Sequence record: LC727699.1
Direction: 5' to 3' (one strand)
DNA: 64,000 nt
Notes under the pieces: generated by a model
What the model was told of the DNA's origin: nothing
The model's input: only the letters and a program-made list of their open reading frames with translations
Databases searched by the model: none
Shown: positions 6,626 to 49,733 of the stretch, piece by piece
How positions within the stretch are numbered: position 1 is the stretch's first letter
Layout: every line of letters starts with the position of its first letter
Position numbers and translations under genes: made by a program

Positions 6626-6946
6626 TTAGCTTGAGCGAGATACCCCTTGATAGACAGGTATTGAATTCTGGTCAGTACATGGAGGTAACCTATACCTCTT
6701 AAGAATTGGTAATATGTTGGCTAGAAAATTAGCATACCATACTTCAAAGGTGACTGAATCATCAATGGTAGTTCTAGCTGTTAACGTCTGACTAGGATAT
6801 TGAGCTAATAGTTGCTGAAAGCAAGCTGATAAAGTGGGTACGTCTGTACACACTGGTAATCGACGTAATAGATCTTCTGATAGTTCAACATCAAACATTC
6901 GTAGACGTTGACAAAGTGTTAAACGATAATCTTCTGTAGTTTTCAT
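6626..6946 (-). CDS. Hypothetical protein
   Basis: 106-aa ORF with AGGA RBS in operon context. Confidence 0.65.
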   Translation of the reverse strand: MKTTEDYRLTLCQRLRMFDVELSEDLLRRLPVCTDVPTLSACFQQLLAQYPSQTLTARTTIDDSVTFEVWYANFLANILPILKRYRLPPCTDQNSIPVYQGVSRSS

Positions 6947-6969
6947 TATAGTTCCTTAGGGTCTTTATT

Positions 6970-7320
6970 TTACTTTGATATCTCACCACAGTAAATGACC
7001 TCTGTTTTTGTTTCAAGCCATTCTACTAATAAATGCCGGTGACAGAAATTACCAGCGCGACAATAACAACCTAATGCTACTTCCTCTAATTGGAAGAACC
7101 ATTTAAAGAATTCTGGATTATCAATCAATGATTGCTCTAACATACTGAGATATGCTTCAGTGTATTCATCACTTGATATAATTCCTTTCTTATGTCCCAT
7201 AACCATTAACCATGTAGGTGCGAGTTGATATGCACCTGATTTAACAGTTATGTCTAGCGGTTTTATTCCTTTCTCTATAACTAACTTATATTTAGCTATC
7301 TGATAAGTGTAAACATTCAT
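6970..7320 (-). CDS. DUF488-like protein
   Basis: DITVKSG...LAPTW and LGCYC...FCHRHLL pattern typical of the DUF488/YeaO-related family. Confidence 0.6.
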   Translation of the reverse strand: MNVYTYQIAKYKLVIEKGIKPLDITVKSGAYQLAPTWLMVMGHKKGIISSDEYTEAYLSMLEQSLIDNPEFFKWFFQLEEVALGCYCRAGNFCHRHLLVEWLETKTEVIYCGEISK

Positions 7321-33259: not shown

Positions 33260-33457
33260 TTAGATATTGAGGTTCTTCATTAAGCGAGCGTTTAAAGCTG
33301 CTGCAATATCAGCCTCAGTTAAAAACTCCCCATTCAGAGATGGGGAGCTGGTGGTGCCACCAAGCGATTGTAGAATTGCTTGAGTACCTAGTTTAACAGC
33401 AGCATGAAGAACAGCAATGTTCTGACCATGTGCTACATTATTACTTAGCTTTTGCAT
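33260..33457 (-). CDS. Small hypothetical protein
   Basis: 65 aa; overlaps the vRNAP beta 3' end by 17 nt and fills the gap to the next gene. Confidence 0.55.
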   Translation of the reverse strand: MQKLSNNVAHGQNIAVLHAAVKLGTQAILQSLGGTTSSPSLNGEFLTEADIAAALNARLMKNLNI

Positions 33458-36400
33458 TAGTGTTTCCTCTATATACAGCTACAAGATGTTTTCCAGCTGC
33501 CCACAAGATACCAGTTGTTGTAGCAATGATTTTAGGAGATAGAACCATTCGTTCTTCTACCGATGTATTACCGAATAGTAGATCAATATTACGGCCATCT
33601 TCAGTTTCATTACGTCCAGTCATTACACGGGAGAATACCGTTTTCATCTGGTTAGCTACTACGCCTTTATCTCCAACACCACATGGGATATCATGATCGA
33701 TATACACTCGAATAATCATGTGGTCATATTCTAAGGCTCGTCCTTTCACTCGATAGTTAGCATCTACTTGTCCAGTGAAAGTAGGTTCTTTCAATGATTT
33801 AGCTCGTTCAGCGCGTTGTTTATCTGACGTATTAGCTAATGCTTGTAAACTTGGTGTCATATCGTCTATTTCACCATGATAGAAGCATTCAATCTTTGAT
33901 ACTGTACCTACGAGCTTAGCACGTGGCGAATATGCTGATAGTTTGCGTAATGTCTCAATAGATGCCTCGTCATATAGTGAGTGAGCAGCTGTTTCAGGAT
34001 CTTCAATTATACATAGAATTGAATTTAAGTCGACATGATCCCCAACTTTCACCATATCTCGAATAGTCTGATCAAACCTAACATCGATATTCTTGATTGC
34101 AGTTGTTTGAGTATTTAACCTTTTAGCTAGGTCTTCAGAAATAACTGAACCGTCTTCTAAAGTGTCAAGGTTATCATCAAATGCTACAACAGCCATACAA
34201 CCGGCTTTCCATAATACTTGCCCAGGCGTATACCTATCTTCAGAGAAATAACGTTTGTTATATGTGATAGTATCTCCACGTTTAAACTTATCACCTTTCT
34301 TTAATGAGGTAACAAGAATGTGTGGATAGTTAACACCAGCTGCTGTGCCATGAACTGTACCTAATTGATATCCAAATACATTACCATCGGCATATTTAAC
34401 TTGGATACCATATTCATCAATAGCTACAACCTCACCATCTTGTTCTGCTGCTACAGCAAAGATAGAACTAGTCCTTTGGGCTATGATTTGTTCATAGCCT
34501 GTACGAACTGGTGTAACTGTATACCCATCAGCATAAATACCTTGCTGCTGCTGAATTGAGATAAAGTTAATTCGCTTAGGGTCATCATGTTCGGTTGCAA
34601 CACCAAGCAGTGCACTAGTTGAGAGTAGTCTAGCTGGCCCATCTGTCTTTGGATCAAACATACGCGTAACACCACGCATGTTTACAAAGTTAGCATCAGG
34701 TACTAAGTAAGCAATAACACCAACGTCACCTGAGTCCACAGTTGATTCACTAACCACACCAACATCCGCTTCACCGTAAATACGTGTACGTGCAACCATT
34801 GAAGTTGGACCGCGTCCACCATCTCCACGATAAGTCATCGCTTCTTGTTCACGGATATTTGCAATGGGGTTAGAATCTTCAATAGTGGCTACTGTCGGAT
34901 CTTGTACAATCTTGCGCCAGATCACGTGTGGATCTAACTCGACAGTTTGCACTGACCCACCATTACGCATATTAAATACACGTACCGCTCTATTGAGTTC
35001 ATTAAAAATAGCCCCTGCCATGCGCTCATAACCACGATAGCGCATATATGCACCATCTACTTCTGCTGGACTCCAGTCGTTCGTTAATAACTCGACAGAC
35101 CGATAAAGCAATCCTTCAAAAGTAGTTGGTTCACCCATCTCCTTGAGTAGACCCTCAGTGATTGGATCGACCCATGCTGAGAAGAGTGTATCAATATCAC
35201 GTGTAAATCTATTACTTAATCCAGCTTCTTCAAGAACCCTGAAGTAAACATCTCGTTTATTGAAATCATAAACAGAATAACGCCGCAGTGATTTATGATA
35301 ACGTTTGAGTCCACTTAATACAAGCATTGCTTTATAATCAGCTCGATCAAATACTAGGATCTCATCAGCGAACGCTAATGTATAATCCGTACTATTGACA
35401 ACAATCCTGGTACCACGCTGATGACGCTGATAATTAACATTCAACTTCTTAAGTAGATTGTTTAAGCCATGGTGATATGCTAAAATGAAACCTAATGGTA
35501 GCTCTTTACCACCAATTGACATTAGAATAGCTTCTAACGGCGCTTTGGTTAGATCTAAGCCAAGTATATCTGTAATGGTACCAATAGGTTCTAGCTCATT
35601 ACCTGTTTTCATGTAAAAGATGGAATTCTTATCTAACAAGATAGCATCAGTGCCATTGAACCCCACCATTATCAAATCATCAGTTTCATAATCTTCGATA
35701 TGTAATCCTTGTTTTGCAAAGAATTCATTACGATCTTTGAAATTAAAATAGAACACATTACGGTGATTATGGAAGCCTTTAAAAGCTGTTCCTAAAGTAG
35801 TGTACACCCTTGGTAGAACATAGTTGGATTGATCTAATTCAGCATAGGTAACTGAATGTACAGACATATCACTTCCATCTAATGCACGGTTGGTAATCGC
35901 TCTGATTAACCAATTATCAAAGTTGTTTTCAGCACGTTCAGATCTGGTCACAAAGGTCTTATTATAATAAGAGGTCAATGCAACTTTACGTGGATTAACT
36001 TTACGAATTGGAATATCAGCACGTTGTAAACGTTGGCGATATGTTACCCCATTAGACATGAACCTACCGTCATTATCAATGACAGGGATACGGAACATTA
36101 CTTGTGAACTTCTACCACGAATAGGCTTTAATGTAACTTTGTGGATTTGGTAATGGTTACCAGAATCGCGTACAGTTTCAATTTTGTAATTAGTTACTGA
36201 TACGCCTTGTTTCTGAACAGATAACACACTGTTTAAAATATCTTTCTTTAATAAGACCTTGTTGTATTTGCGTTGGATGGCTTTTAACTTACTACCCAAC
36301 ATTGATTTATCAACAATGGTTGGCTTATCTTCAAAAGTGGTGTCTTCTGGAATCTTAAGATCATCTGGATGATATTCCATCGCCTCAGCGATCGTCATAG

Positions 36401-37796
36401 GTTCTACTGATTCATCATTAGGATCGGTAAATGGATCAGGTAGACGACGATACATAATCGAATCTTCTTGAGCTTGCTCGAATGTATTCGCAGAAATCAT
36501 ATTCACGCGATACATATCGTATGCTTTAGCTCTAATGGCATCGATTAGTTTATCTTCTTCATCAACTTCAGTATTGATGAATAACTCATCTTCTGGTACA
36601 TCTGTTACAATGAGTTCCTTCTCTTCTTTAATTTGGCGAGAAGGTGAAGATTCCAGTGGATCTTTTTCAATGATAAGCTTTGTTACCTCAAGATCACTTT
36701 CTGGTGGTGGGGTATATGTTACCTCAATTGCGCCAATATCAATTAAGTTAGTTAAGTTGGTTGGGTCAAATTGAACATCATCAATAACATCAACTTCAGT
36801 TACTTCTTCTTCAACGTTATTAGACTCAACATCCTCAACCTCTTCTGCTTCACCTTCTTCATAACTAACCGGAGTTTCTTCATCAACAATAATATCTTCA
36901 TTAAAGATAGGCGTATCTTCTTTAATTAATGAAGTATTACCTTGGTTATATTCAACCATCGCTGATACTAGTGAAATAAGGCGCCTAGCTATTTGCTGGG
37001 TATCATAACCTTTATCATCTTTAATTTCTGGATCACGACGCCATTGATCAAGCATCCCTAAGTTAATAACAAAGAATGAACTTTGTACACGGAATAAAAG
37101 ATTAATGTTACCGTAATACTTAGCATCGATGACATTCATGAAAGAACTTTCACGATCATCAGAAACCCAGCGAACTAAATCAAATATATTTAGAATATCA
37201 GGTGTATTGAATTGATTAGCTAGATCTTGAGTTAAACCCCCTCGTAGTTTATTAAAAGAAGAAGGAGGTGGAACTAACTCAGGTAAGTGTACATCAATGA
37301 ACTGGTTCCAACCAGGAAAACGTTCACATGCAGCCGCTACGCCACTCCAGAATGTACGCATGTCATTTGACCAACGGAACCATGTAGCTTTATAAGAAGC
37401 CATATAATTCCATTGAGGGTTAATTAAATTATAATTCATTACCAGAATGTTCTGGTTTGATAATTTAAAACCGGTATCACTGCGTAAAGGTTTAAAGAAA
37501 CGGTTCTGGCGGCGAAACTCTTGAATCATTGTTGCTGGGATATTTGAAGTCCTACGTGGATTACCTTCAAATGTAAGCATATCAGTAACATGCTCAATAT
37601 ATACTTTACCTTGATGTTTGGAGAATAATGGGTCTGTTTGACTAGGACCCATTACTGCATTATTACCATCGAAGAACTGATAAATGGATTCGAAAGGTAG
37701 ATCAAGTTTATTTAGAGCATGCAACTTAGGTGACTGAAGTTTAGCATATTCGCGTACACTATAATTTTTCAGAAACTGTGTAATATTTAAGCGCAT
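33441..37796 (-). CDS. rpoB: Virion RNA polymerase beta subunit, N-terminal part (phiKZ gp178-like)
   Basis: 1451 aa with DSNPIANI..QEAMTYRGDGGR, GVVSESTVDSG, LEDGSVIS and GVGDKGVVANQMKTVFS; beta-subunit double-psi-barrel motifs. Confidence 0.92.
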   Translation of the reverse strand: MRLNITQFLKNYSVREYAKLQSPKLHALNKLDLPFESIYQFFDGNNAVMGPSQTDPLFSKHQGKVYIEHVTDMLTFEGNPRRTSNIPATMIQEFRRQNRFFKPLRSDTGFKLSNQNILVMNYNLINPQWNYMASYKATWFRWSNDMRTFWSGVAAACERFPGWNQFIDVHLPELVPPPSSFNKLRGGLTQDLANQFNTPDILNIFDLVRWVSDDRESSFMNVIDAKYYGNINLLFRVQSSFFVINLGMLDQWRRDPEIKDDKGYDTQQIARRLISLVSAMVEYNQGNTSLIKEDTPIFNEDIIVDEETPVSYEEGEAEEVEDVESNNVEEEVTEVDVIDDVQFDPTNLTNLIDIGAIEVTYTPPPESDLEVTKLIIEKDPLESSPSRQIKEEKELIVTDVPEDELFINTEVDEEDKLIDAIRAKAYDMYRVNMISANTFEQAQEDSIMYRRLPDPFTDPNDESVEPMTIAEAMEYHPDDLKIPEDTTFEDKPTIVDKSMLGSKLKAIQRKYNKVLLKKDILNSVLSVQKQGVSVTNYKIETVRDSGNHYQIHKVTLKPIRGRSSQVMFRIPVIDNDGRFMSNGVTYRQRLQRADIPIRKVNPRKVALTSYYNKTFVTRSERAENNFDNWLIRAITNRALDGSDMSVHSVTYAELDQSNYVLPRVYTTLGTAFKGFHNHRNVFYFNFKDRNEFFAKQGLHIEDYETDDLIMVGFNGTDAILLDKNSIFYMKTGNELEPIGTITDILGLDLTKAPLEAILMSIGGKELPLGFILAYHHGLNNLLKKLNVNYQRHQRGTRIVVNSTDYTLAFADEILVFDRADYKAMLVLSGLKRYHKSLRRYSVYDFNKRDVYFRVLEEAGLSNRFTRDIDTLFSAWVDPITEGLLKEMGEPTTFEGLLYRSVELLTNDWSPAEVDGAYMRYRGYERMAGAIFNELNRAVRVFNMRNGGSVQTVELDPHVIWRKIVQDPTVATIEDSNPIANIREQEAMTYRGDGGRGPTSMVARTRIYGEADVGVVSESTVDSGDVGVIAYLVPDANFVNMRGVTRMFDPKTDGPARLLSTSALLGVATEHDDPKRINFISIQQQQGIYADGYTVTPVRTGYEQIIAQRTSSIFAVAAEQDGEVVAIDEYGIQVKYADGNVFGYQLGTVHGTAAGVNYPHILVTSLKKGDKFKRGDTITYNKRYFSEDRYTPGQVLWKAGCMAVVAFDDNLDTLEDGSVISEDLAKRLNTQTTAIKNIDVRFDQTIRDMVKVGDHVDLNSILCIIEDPETAAHSLYDEASIETLRKLSAYSPRAKLVGTVSKIECFYHGEIDDMTPSLQALANTSDKQRAERAKSLKEPTFTGQVDANYRVKGRALEYDHMIIRVYIDHDIPCGVGDKGVVANQMKTVFSRVMTGRNETEDGRNIDLLFGNTSVEERMVLSPKIIATTTGILWAAGKHLVAVYRGNTNAKAK

Positions 37797-37798
37797 GA

Positions 37799-37984
37799 TT
37801 AATCCCTTTGTTTGGGTTCCCCAGTCATGTACCGAAGAGTTAAATTGAGTGTATGGACACCAACACTAAATGCCAGTCGACCATCGGCATGTATATATGC
37901 AATACGTTTCTTAAAGAAAGCATCTGTTTCAGCGATAGCTTCCTCTGAATAAACTGCGTTAAATGATACAGTGTCCCCGTCGAA
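37799..37984 (-). CDS. rpoC: vRNAP beta' exon 2 (61 aa; not in ORF track)
   Basis: Reads FDGDTVSFNAVYSEEAIAETDAFFKKRIAYIHADGRLAFSVGVHTLNLTLRYMTGEPKQRD*, preceded by the intron terminal G at 37985. Confidence 0.9.
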   Translation of the reverse strand, partial: FDGDTVSFNAVYSEEAIAETDAFFKKRIAYIHADGRLAFSVGVHTLNLTLRYMTGEPKQRD

Positions 37985-38298
37985 CGTTATGTTCAGTATC
38001 AGTCGTTAATTGATACCCGCACCATTACGTGCAGCTCTAGCTCTCGCTAGAAGACCAGACTATATCTTCACCTACAGCATTATCTGTTTAGGTGCTCTCC
38101 ATTTCGAGTCACTTGACCCTACGGGGCGCAACCCCCTAGTCGTTGAACGTTCCACATATTACAGTTAAGTAACTTAGCGGCTTCGCTGCTGATTGTCTCT
38201 ACCTAATCATTTTCAAACATTCGCACTTACTGTTTCCAGTTATGCTGTAGTTGATTAGTTTAACGAGAGTTTCCAGCAATTAAAAGAGTAAAACATAT

Positions 38299-39372
38299 TC
38301 ATTTCGGAATATGTGGACTTATGTATTTTACTGCATAATTTCTAAAAATACAACCATGTTCAGATTTCCTTAGATGATAACCTAAGCAACCTGGTGTGAC
38401 ATTGAAAAACTCAGCAGCTTCCTTCAGTGAGTTTTTTATTAATACAGCTTCAGATTCTAATGATTCAATATGAATTCTACGATGGGTTTCCACATATACG
38501 AGATTATCATTATTCCATGGCGTATCGTCATCTTCGTATTTAAACTGTAATGACTGATTGTAAACAAGATTACTATTTTTAGTTAAACGTAATCTTAAAG
38601 TTTCACCATCTACACCAATTTCTCGGGCGCAGTGCTCTATGCTGTAATAACGAGTTATATTGGTAGTTATAAGGTCTCTGACCAAAACTGCTTTGGAATT
38701 ATGAAGTCCATTGATATGCGCATGTTCGCAATTTCTTTTACGGGTAGCCCATTCAAGGTTTGTTAAATCATTACAATCTTTAATTGTATTTAAATGATTC
38801 ACATCGAGTGAATCAACATTACCTGGATATTTTAAGAAAGCTAGACTAAGAAGACGGTGCATTCCTACAATTGTACGTTTACCTACATCCGGCTGAACAC
38901 CATACATCAGATAACCATCTTCATTCATGTATGGTGAAAGATGATTACTGTTAACAGTGCTAAGTACTTGTCCAGCGCGATTAATCATGTATCTACTATA
39001 TCCGGGAATATAACAGTATTCTTTTATTAATGGATGAGTAAGTTCGCCTTCAGGACACGCCCAAATAAAATTAGTTAGGCGATGATTACTTTTATTACCG
39101 TCTTTGTAAATAACGCGTAGTTTATGTAGTAACCGCATTGGTAATATGCAGTTTCTATACGTAACACCTAATACAACAGATAGTGACAAACCGTCAAACC
39201 ATTCACCTGTTATATGTTCAGGAAAAAGATGTTCGCCTTCATCACTAACCATTGTGGTCAGTACGCGTTTACTTATACTTTCTCTAGCGATACCACTACA
39301 GCTGATTTCATACATGCCACCAGTATGTGGTATCTTTTTAAATCCTGGATTTTCAATGAATTTTTTTAACAT
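38299..39372 (-). CDS. Intron-encoded HNH homing endonuclease (NUMOD4-HNH, C-terminal HTH/NUMOD1-like repeats)
   Basis: IPGYSRYMINRAG NUMOD4-like segment; MHRLLSLAF...VNHLNTIKDCNDLTNLEWATRKRNCEH beta-beta-alpha-Me motif. Confidence 0.88.
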   Translation of the reverse strand: MLKKFIENPGFKKIPHTGGMYEISCSGIARESISKRVLTTMVSDEGEHLFPEHITGEWFDGLSLSVVLGVTYRNCILPMRLLHKLRVIYKDGNKSNHRLTNFIWACPEGELTHPLIKEYCYIPGYSRYMINRAGQVLSTVNSNHLSPYMNEDGYLMYGVQPDVGKRTIVGMHRLLSLAFLKYPGNVDSLDVNHLNTIKDCNDLTNLEWATRKRNCEHAHINGLHNSKAVLVRDLITTNITRYYSIEHCAREIGVDGETLRLRLTKNSNLVYNQSLQFKYEDDDTPWNNDNLVYVETHRRIHIESLESEAVLIKNSLKEAAEFFNVTPGCLGYHLRKSEHGCIFRNYAVKYISPHIPK

Positions 39373-39376
39373 GGTT

Positions 39377-39405
39377 GTTATCCTATTTATTTCCTATAGG
39401 ATAAC
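39377..39405 (-). promoter_or_regulatory. Hairpin sequestering the HNH ribosome-binding site
   Basis: Perfect 10-bp stem GUUAUCCUAU/AUAGGAUAAC whose 3' arm contains AGGA, ending 4 nt before the HNH AUG. Confidence 0.6.
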
Positions 39406-39427
39406 TAGATATACAGTATTACAATTA

Positions 39428-40894
39428 ATCCGCCCCCAATGGCGCGAGAATAGAAGGAGAGATGGATACTGAGTCATGCCACTGGGCTGGTTTATTTAAT
39501 TCAAACACAGGGAATTCTAAGGCTGGTTCCAACGTATCATCACGTTCCCATTGATCATTTAACGGATAACGTAATTCACCCACTACGGTTGTTTTAACAT
39601 ACATCTTACAGGGGATAGAGCTATTGTAGTTTTCTACAGGATATCGTGTAACAAACGCTGAGTTTGTTCGCCACATACTTAATCCACTAAGGTAAACTAA
39701 TTCGGCATAAGTAATAGGTCTAACAAATTTCTTATTTAGATTAGTAGGTAACTCATCGATGTTGCGGAATATTTTAAAATTCTGTTTATCATCAACGTAA
39801 ATAAGGGCTAGATAATGATCAGCAATTTCAATTGCACGTGAACGTTTTTCAATGACATCTAACTCATTGATGATTTGTTCTTGCCCTTCAGGAGTTCCCC
39901 ATAAATCCATATCTTCGTTAGAGATATCGACCCATTCTAAACGTAGTGTTTTCTTATTGATGAGCTGTACAGTGTTAGTAACTGTATCAAACACTTCACC
40001 AACTACACCTTGCCTTAGTGCAAAGATTGTACGCGGTGCAACTGAACGAGCTGCTTGATGTAAGCCAACTACGGCATCTTTGAATGTTGGTCGATTAGGT
40101 GAATCAAGATCAGCAGCATTAGTATCTAGCGAACTAATGACGTTACGTGTACCATTGGCAATACGACGGGATGCCCATTTAGATTGAATGTATCCACGTT
40201 TACCGGATAGCAGTCGTTCATAATGTTCATAAATAGCTAATACGGTGTTTTGCATTGCTACTCGTTTGCGATCATAGATACTCAAGTCATCATTTGGTCC
40301 AAAGCTATCAGGTACACCAAACGACTGATTTAATAGATACCTATAGTGTTCATTGATCTCATCCATCTCAACACGATTATTCTCATCAATCTCTGCATCA
40401 CGATAAGCGGCTGGTGTTACAAGCATGTCTTTAAAAATACAGTTATCTTTATATTTTTCGATTAATTGTAACCTTGATAGCCGAACCCCTGACTTAGTGG
40501 ACCCAAAGTCAATTCGTTTCCAGTTATCAAAAAAGAATGTATAACCAGTTTTACCAGTTAGTTCATCGGCGCGGATAAAATCTTTAATAGATTCGTCAAA
40601 TACTGCAAATGCCTTACCAAGAATAATTTCTTCATAGAAAGCTTTTAATTTAATTAAGTTTCGATATACAGCTGGATGGATAAGTTCTAAACCTAAATGA
40701 ATATATCCAAATAAACTCTCACGATCAGTTGATCCAACTCTTCCAAAAATGGAAACAGAGAACAAACCATCTTCATGAAAGTTACCACCTAAACCTTCAA
40801 ATATCTCATGACTCTTTACTTGACCTAAGAACTTTAATTGTTCTTTAGTGGGAATAAGTAAAGAAATATTAAAAGGAACTAATGCCTTCTTCAT
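39428..40894 (-). CDS. rpoC: vRNAP beta' exon 1 (phiKZ gp180-like); spliced product about 550 aa
   Basis: EGLGGNFHEDGLFSVSIFG, LLSGKRGYIQSKWASRRI and TRYPV motifs; ends LAPLGAD just before an in-frame TAA that is the first intron codon. Confidence 0.92.
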
Positions 40895-40969
40895 TTTCTA
40901 TTTTCCTATTTTGGTAATACTAAGTTAAACAACGATATGATACTTTACTAATCGTCAATGGAGTTTAAT

Positions 40970-49733
<8,764 letters not shown>

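Follow-up and report, generated by a model that had tools for sequence, protein, structure and literature searches.

The phiKZ gp179/gp180 group I intron in the virion RNA polymerase beta' gene of Pseudomonas phage sp. LC

In 2002, Mesyanzhinov et al. (as relayed in PMC10914365) predicted introns linked to gp56, gp72 and gp179 of phage phiKZ, introns in phiKZ gp55 and gp180 have been listed (PMC11512511), and the gp179/gp180 intron is also cited in bioRxiv 10.1101/2025.11.23.690004. Here we analyse an element that interrupts the virion RNA polymerase (RNAP) beta'-N gene of a Phikzvirus from waste water in Japan, Pseudomonas phage sp. LC, within the initial 64 kb of its record LC727699.1; this stretch is called the window, and coordinates refer to it unless another record is named. 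The element is the known phiKZ gp179/gp180 intron in a different backbone, and it is new neither in kind nor as an instance. An earlier, sequence-only reading of the window had held that the class was not new, which is correct; indeed, this very intron was already known in phiKZ. In the accessible parts of the phiKZ literature we found no statement of the junction coordinates of the gp180/gp179 intron, and what the present analysis adds is an explicit junction, an annotation of exon 2, the architecture of P1 and its loop (L1), evidence from RNA contigs and a set of homing mosaics. Nothing in the finding should surprise a specialist.

In phiKZ the intron lies at the same site, is 99.9% identical to that of LC (2 differences in 1443 nt) and encodes an HNH protein that is 100% identical to the one in LC; phiKZ differs in that exon 1 of LC is SL2-like and ~5% diverged from phiKZ (63 differences in 1467 nt), and in that its own exon 1 is one codon longer. 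The PhiPA3 gp210 intron (Birkholz et al. 2024, PMC11620839), from a Pseudomonas jumbo phage that forms a nucleus, likewise belongs to group I, encodes an HNH nicking endonuclease and is placed beside conserved Asp codons in the catalytic region of a virion RNAP subunit, but it occupies another site, in the virion RNAP beta gene (gp211/209, the homologue of phiKZ gp178), and gp210 shares with the open reading frame (ORF) of the LC intron 31% identity over 58% of the length. Whereas gp210 is a proven nicking homing enzyme with a demonstrated competitive role (PMC11620839), gp179 is a predicted homing endonuclease. The SPO1/SP82 DNA polymerase intron, which encodes I-HmuI, resembles the LC intron as a phage group I intron with a homologous endonuclease in an essential polymerase gene; it differs in host gene and target sequence, I-HmuI has 174 aa compared with 357 aa in LC, and the LC ORF lies in the P1 loop, overlapping the guide and P2. 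Finally, the T4 td, nrdB and sunY introns (subgroup IA2) share with LC the P7.1/P7.2 hairpins, the U.G pair at the 5' splice site and the terminal G, and translation of their ORFs is restrained by RNA structure, as we infer for LC. The LC intron starts with UAAUUG, as the td intron does. The T4 introns differ in that their ORFs, of the GIY-YIG or HNH type, are found in the P6 or P9 loops, in contrast to L1 in LC.

Exon junctions in DNA and RNA

We hold it highly probable that the element is a mobile group I intron, inserted in phase 0 between the Asp and Phe codons of ADFDGD in virion RNAP beta'-N and removed at the predicted junction. The parts of the interrupted gene, with the evidence for each, are as follows.

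39428..40894, minus strand: exon 1, virion RNAP beta'-N gene (PHIKZ180 homologue), 489 codons (ORF list, PHROG 2986)
37985..39427, minus strand: group I intron, 1443 nt, phase 0 between D and F codons (SL2 comparison, RNA contigs, Rfam)
37799..37984, minus strand: exon 2, 61 codons plus stop, starting F D G D T V S F (PHROG 2986, SL2 gene)

All relevant features are on the minus strand of the window, where CCA TTG GGG GCG GAT is followed at the 5' boundary (39428/39427) by TAA TTG TAA, and GAA CAT AAC G at the 3' boundary (37985/37984) by TTC GAC GGG GAC ACT. The exon ends named in the sequence-only reading, GGG GCG GAU and UUC GAC GGG GAC, are thus present where it had put them; the final D of exon 1 (GAT) is the first Asp of DFDGD, and the intron begins with U and ends, as also proposed, with a terminal G at 37985. 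Phage SL2 carries an uninterrupted 1653-nt gene for 550 aa at the same locus, and exons 1 and 2 joined at 39428/37984 match it with 0 mismatches in 1653 nt, reading LAPLGADFDGDTVSFNAVYSEE. The DNA alone leaves an ambiguity of 1 nt in the insertion point, with a T after both 39428 and 37985; 39428/37984 was taken as the one choice that puts U ahead of the 5' splice site and makes G the final base of the intron.

At the RNA level, we used Logan contigs of four RNA-seq runs, from four studies of phiKZ-type infections, over positions 37400-41000; such contigs show presence only, not proportions. In all four runs a spliced contig joins 37983 to 39427, with 1443 nt skipped and one base fitting either side, and the joint is therefore the predicted 37984/39428 junction. 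Together with the identity of the intron-less SL2 allele over 1653 nt, this confirms the exact junction by the RNA-seq check that had been suggested for it. The junction contigs are 1.7-9.2 kb long and extend no less than 30 nt, in some cases several hundred, to each side of the joint, and because they carry ~60 phiKZ-type differences from LC in exon 1, they come from phiKZ-type infections and not from LC. The intron itself is covered by separate contigs. In run X5, an 18-nt Illumina adapter tail directly abuts 37985, and an RNA end therefore lies at the terminal G, which indicates that fragments ending there are abundant. In run X10, a 1420-nt contig joins the last base of the intron to its first (it 'goes back 1443'), as a full-length intron circle would give, although this joint was seen in one of the four runs and may be a reverse-transcription artefact.

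Joined exons in RNA libraries could instead represent DNA of intron-less variants, the intron being a tolerated or decaying insertion. DNA can occur in RNA libraries, and intron-less alleles are the majority among related phages: 35 of 47 phiKZ-like records have no intron-specific match at the site, and 18 of these, inspected for coverage, are exon-only. Splicing is also opposed by a nanopore (ONT-cappable-seq) study that obtained no evidence for it in phiKZ introns under its conditions (PMC10914365), and it should be noted that our RNA evidence consists of assembled phiKZ-type contigs, neither raw reads nor RNA of phage LC, for which an intron-less DNA subpopulation could in principle be a source. 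However, the same junction recurs in four independent studies on contigs with a phiKZ-type exon 1, and the phiKZ reference genome has the intron; an RNA end at the terminal G and an intron circle joint do not exist in DNA; the phages are viable although the unspliced gene lacks two catalytic Asp codons; and the ribozyme core has been kept by compensatory evolution (below). An origin of the joined contigs in DNA is, in our view, very improbable. The identity of the intron, its fold, its exact junctions and the ligation of its exons in vivo are established by these data and by the structural comparison below, and the contigs settle an inconsistency in the literature, one long-read study having seen no splicing of phiKZ introns.

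The placement of the intron in the Mg-binding motif of virion RNAP beta', as proposed from the sequence, is upheld by family membership and by the register with E. coli beta'. Exon 1 aligns with positions 1-484 of the 539-position profile of PHROG 2986 ('RNA polymerase beta subunit'; E 1e-205) and exon 2 with positions 485-538 (E 2e-15), and since these ranges adjoin, the two exons are consecutive parts of one family. A PDB search with the single spliced 550-aa sequence gave no match, and the only BLASTP alignment of the spliced beta' with its paralogue in the non-virion RNAP (nvRNAP) was a local one of 20 aa, at the motif (E 0.029). A profile built from 18 full-length homologues finds the nvRNAP beta' of Bacillus phage AR9 (7S00/7S01) at E 1e-17, and bacterial beta' chains too. 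Positions 476-546 of this profile fall on E. coli beta' 447-517, by which D489, D491 and D493, all of them invariant columns in the 18-homologue alignment, correspond to E. coli D460, D462 and D464. Gp180 has been described as a virion RNAP component with DFDGD that is packaged in virions (PMC10612078). If the intron is retained, translation stops at its first codon, UAA, and the 489-aa product is without two of the three catalytic aspartates, as had been claimed, and without 57 further residues; splicing would on this ground be needed for infectious progeny, and the deduction is a sound one.

Over 37700-40900 the window is 100% identical to LC727699.1, at matching coordinates, and 97.9% identical to phiKZ (megablast), where the locus corresponds to PHIKZ180, which bears an annotation as both RNA polymerase beta subunit and structural head protein, together with PHIKZ179 and PHIKZ178. 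In LC, exon 1 is annotated as coding sequence (CDS) RVBP18_0400 with the TAA of the intron included, and the corresponding ORF (39425-40894, 489 aa) has the C-terminus LAPLGAD, followed by the stop. The absence of the 61-aa exon 2 from the ORF track, also part of the sequence-only reading, holds as well: no ORF of at least 40 aa in the ORF list of the window covers it, and no CDS is annotated there in the GenBank records of LC, phiKZ, Koomba and fMGyn-Pae01. Exon 2 has no usable start codon, the first in-frame ATG, GTG or TTG being close to its end, and its stop TAA (37801-37799) lies two bases ahead of the ATG of the next gene.

33441-37796, minus strand: PHIKZ178 homologue (beta subunit), uninterrupted ORF, next gene after exon 2

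The practical value of the finding is mainly in annotation. In LC727699.1, phiKZ and most relatives, beta'-N is annotated as a protein of 489/490 aa from which two catalytic aspartates and exon 2 are absent; the corrected product is join(complement 39428..40894, 37799..37984), 550 aa. A 3-nt insertion (TAC), which the phiKZ-type RNA contigs show relative to LC at window 40200-40205, accounts for the greater length of exon 1 in phiKZ (490 aa, compared with 489 aa in LC and SL2). Between 33441 and 47683, the LC record labels both polymerase genes, the HNH ORF and a 2241-aa neighbour 'hypothetical protein'; this neighbour is the homologue of PHIKZ181, a tail-associated endolysin.

Ribozyme core and P1

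The sole Rfam match within the 64-kb window is to Intron_gpI (RF00028), at 92.2 bits (gathering threshold 50) and E 2.3e-22 over model positions 1-253 of 253, which answers with a full-length match the suggestion that a group I covariance model be applied. The elements of the core and of the 3' end are listed here.

38035..38356, minus strand: ribozyme core (P3-P9), Rfam Intron_gpI match (covariance model, alignment pair counts)
38293..38314, minus strand: P2 hairpin, 8 bp, with the ORF stop codon in its loop (RNAalifold columns 52-75, compensatory changes)
38123-38136, minus strand: P7.1 (Rfam insert, compensatory changes)
38106-38119, minus strand: P7.2 (Rfam insert, compensatory changes)
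38017-38034, minus strand: P9.1 (RNAalifold pair counts)
37996-38016, minus strand: P9.2 (RNAalifold pair counts)
37985, minus strand: last base of an 11-nt tail ending in the terminal G (X5 adapter joint)

For covariation, RNAalifold was run on eight related introns; those compared included ORF-less introns at the same AD/FDGD site in the metagenomic phages L022, L024 and L025, whose beta' proteins are 51-61% identical, an ORF-deleted derivative from fMGyn-Pae01 and sibling introns from the LC genome. The consensus recovers P2, P3, P4, P6, P7.1, P7.2, P8, P9, P9.1 and P9.2, and 41 of the 68 predicted pairs keep pairing through changes on both sides; such two-sided compensatory changes occur in P2, P3, P6, P7.1, P7.2, P8, P9, P9.1 and P9.2, whereas P4 is invariant among the eight introns and hence uninformative. 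In the Rfam alignment, the P7 5' strand and the P3 3' strand are separated by an insert of 33 nt that folds as two hairpins, P7.1 and P7.2, both with compensatory variation (in P7.2 of fMGyn-Pae01, a G-C pair has become A-U and a G.U pair G-C). The group I core with P7.1 and P7.2 is therefore as it had been described from the sequence, with conserved core strands in the Rfam alignment and compensatory changes in relatives, and by its P7.1/P7.2 hairpins the intron is of the subgroup IA type. Three predicted pairings were set aside: a local RNAalifold hairpin in place of the P7 pseudoknot, which is spurious; an RNAalifold pairing of two guide bases with the 3' tail; and the first helix of the Rfam alignment (38356-38330), which contains four non-canonical pairs and was taken as a misaligned strand of the P1 extension.

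The two strands of P1 flank the intron ORF.

39406..39431, minus strand: P1 5' strand, made up of exon GGAU (39431-39428) and intron nt 1-22 (extension) (duplex energy)
38315..38344, minus strand: P1 extension 3' strand and guide GUCC (38315-38318) (duplex energy, orthologues)

The guide GUCC pairs with exon GGAU to give a U.G wobble at the 5' splice site, and the extension pairs intron nt 1-22 with nt 1084-1109 over roughly 18 bp. The duplex of P1 and its extension has an energy of -18.0 kcal/mol, compared with -6.8 +/- 2.3 for shuffled sequences, and none of 500 shuffles was as good. All four orthologous introns have GUCC next to P2 on its 5' side, the same P1 arrangement is found in the ORF-less orthologues, and the guides of sibling introns complement their own exons (GAAAU/GUUUC in LC, GGAGAU/GUCUCC in record G001). 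Other guide candidates were discarded: AUCU (nt 18-21) would give U-A, not U.G, at the splice site, as would AUCC (nt 26-29), which also lies inside a stronger 10-bp hairpin, and the many chance 4-bp matches beginning with GU are neither conserved nor adjacent to P2.

On this arrangement, exon GGAU in the pre-mRNA would pair with GUCC ~1.1 kb downstream while the ~18-bp P1 extension closes off the ORF loop; the guanosine cofactor would attack after U39428, and the exon end so released would in turn attack behind the terminal G (37985) and link GAU with UUC. The spliced message would encode a subunit of 550 aa in which the three catalytic aspartates are all present; if splicing failed, translation would stop at UAA and leave a 489-aa protein missing two of them. 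Several features of the fold weigh against this scheme: P1 proper is short (3-4 bp), P10 is weak (2 bp), a duplex partner for the P1 strand that is equally or more stable exists inside the ORF at about nt 425, and P7, being invariant and pseudoknotted, has no covariation support, although it is not contradicted either. The partner at about nt 425 was rejected, being neither conserved nor adjacent to P2.

The weakness of P1 (4 bp) and P10 (2 bp), and the 1.1 kb between the 5' splice site and the guide, would make chaperoning possible, and splicing in vivo might then depend on a phage or host protein cofactor and not be autocatalytic. Against this, every element of the catalytic core is canonical and the core clears the Rfam threshold by a wide margin, and phage subgroup IA introns generally self-splice in vitro. 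We consider dependence on a cofactor unlikely and infer that the LC intron is autocatalytic without protein help.

The intron ORF and probable homing

Two further features occupy the P1 loop.

38299..39372, minus strand: HNH homing endonuclease ORF, 357 aa (= phiKZ gp179) (Pfam, PHROG, I-HmuI, PHIKZ179)
39377..39405, minus strand: 10-bp hairpin whose 3' strand holds the ORF Shine-Dalgarno (AGGA) (minimum free energy -11.3 kcal/mol)

The ORF matches Pfam HNH_3 (E 7e-9; 35.6 bits, cut-off 24.8) and the HNH families PHROG 59/959, aligns with I-HmuI (PDB 1U3E) over query residues 121-229, including the HNH core, at E 5.5e-8, and has 100% amino-acid identity to PHIKZ179. Because the P1 strands flank it, with the guide ~1.1 kb downstream of the 5' splice site, the ORF lies within the P1 loop, and its last ~15 codons span the P1 extension, the guide and the P2 5' strand, with the stop in the P2 loop. 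Translation of the ORF and folding of the ribozyme would on this architecture be mutually exclusive on a given molecule. The Shine-Dalgarno hairpin, which is conserved in fMGyn-Pae01 and in metagenome locus L023, probably limits translation of the endonuclease.

Among the same 47 records, the intron is present in full in 10 and as an ORF-less derivative in 2 (OMKO1 and fMGyn-Pae01). This polymorphism of presence and absence, and two mosaics centred on the insertion site, support its mobility indirectly. The flanks of the LC intron, that is, its exons, are 100% identical to those of intron-less SL2, and the difference between LC and phiKZ in exon 1 that is nearest to the junction is 31 nt away. 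In fMGyn-Pae01, divergence is 13-15% over the final ~470 nt of exon 1 and 11-13% in the intron, compared with 0.2-1.6% for the rest of the gene. These patterns indicate recent homing with co-conversion, and those of LC, SL2 and phiKZ would make a clean natural case of it in Pseudomonas jumbo phages that are candidates for therapy.

The intron might be spliced but no longer mobile, with an HNH ORF that is domesticated or decaying and absences that are precise losses and not the result of homing. The ORF-less derivatives would fit this, as would the viability of phiKZ orf179 deletions (bioRxiv 10.1101/2025.11.23.690004), and the endonuclease activity is assigned from sequence similarity. But the ORF is intact and 98-100% conserved in the 10 records, with an HNH core that aligns to that of I-HmuI, and both a recombination boundary in the LC/SL2/phiKZ comparison no more than 31 nt from the insertion site and a co-converted exon tract in fMGyn-Pae01 are hallmarks of homing. 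Loss of mobility thus seems to us an improbable reading; most likely, the gp179-like HNH enzyme nicks intron-less alleles of co-infecting phiKZ-like phages and so drives homing of the intron. In phiKZ, transposon insertions in orf179 were not recovered, whereas clean deletions were viable (bioRxiv 10.1101/2025.11.23.690004), a pattern that fits a need for an intact, spliceable intron and not for the enzyme.

Related introns at the ADFDGD motif

The nvRNAP beta' gene (the gp55 homologue; about 182.9-184.7 kb in LC727699.1, loci L019 and L021) contains group I introns at three polymorphic sites around its own catalytic motif. At HRN/PTL, LC has a 305-nt ORF-less intron that is absent in phiKZ; at APN/ADFDGD, both LC and phiKZ (L013) have a 1372-nt HNH intron; and in record L016 an intron directly follows ADFDGD. 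The number of Rfam matches per genome is 4 in LC, 3 in phiKZ, 4 in SL2 and 5 in fMGyn-Pae01. The sibling introns (phiKZ gp55/gp56) have the same core as the virion RNAP intron, with ~90% identity over the last ~130 nt, an insertion site 6 nt away in homologous coordinates (APN/ADFDGD) and an HNH ORF in the same position; they differ in lying in a paralogous gene, in their guide and exon context, and in HNH ORFs without detectable DNA similarity. The likeness of the 3' ends suggests recombination or gene conversion between introns of one genome.

Contig depth over window 37990-38072 is 2-5 times higher and comes in separate contigs, because this stretch is common to the sibling nvRNAP intron (~130 nt of the 3' end at 89-90% identity). 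In run X9, the terminal G of the phiKZ gp56 intron (L013) is joined to an internal site at intron position 1005, which follows CCUUAU, a mimic of the 5' exon end CCUAAU of that intron; such a joint would give a 368-nt circle of the gp56 ribozyme core.

Interruption of ADFDGD appears to be common beyond these phages. Among the 120 best homologue clusters of the 550-aa beta', 34 (in the range P0038-P0115) lack the motif, the called protein ending at G[AG]D, the LC site, or at GADF, a second position found in six or seven of the 34, and because 34 of 120 clusters stop there, interruption of the motif is widespread among metagenomic jumbo phages. Insertions fall at no fewer than four positions within a span of about 20 nt (N/ADFDGD, AD/FDGD, ADF/ and ADFDGD/), and the virion RNAP and nvRNAP target DNAs are identical in 15 of 21 bases, counted by eye. 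Similar targets and near-identical intron 3' ends could allow ectopic movement or recombination between the paralogues. PhiKZ-like phages transcribe inside a ribosome-free phage nucleus, where introns with an ORF extending over P1, the guide and P2 could complete their folding and splicing ahead of any disruption by ribosomes; if true, this may explain why such intron architectures thrive in these phages. That the ADFDGD stretch is an intron hot spot common to both paralogous polymerases and that splicing is sheltered by the nucleus is, for the two taken jointly, a tentative and somewhat doubtful proposal.

Two metagenomic loci, L023 and L026, gave no Rfam match, both ending before the ribozyme core; at L026:4464-6010, the interruption is of the GADF type and holds a 439-aa HNH-like ORF, and the downstream DGD frame has only 13 aa before the locus ends early. 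In L024 (4904-7206), exon 2 is followed, ahead of the next polymerase gene, by a 534-aa ORF without a Pfam match, and beyond this ORF the group I model of Rfam finds another intron-like match at 6680-7069 (58 bits).

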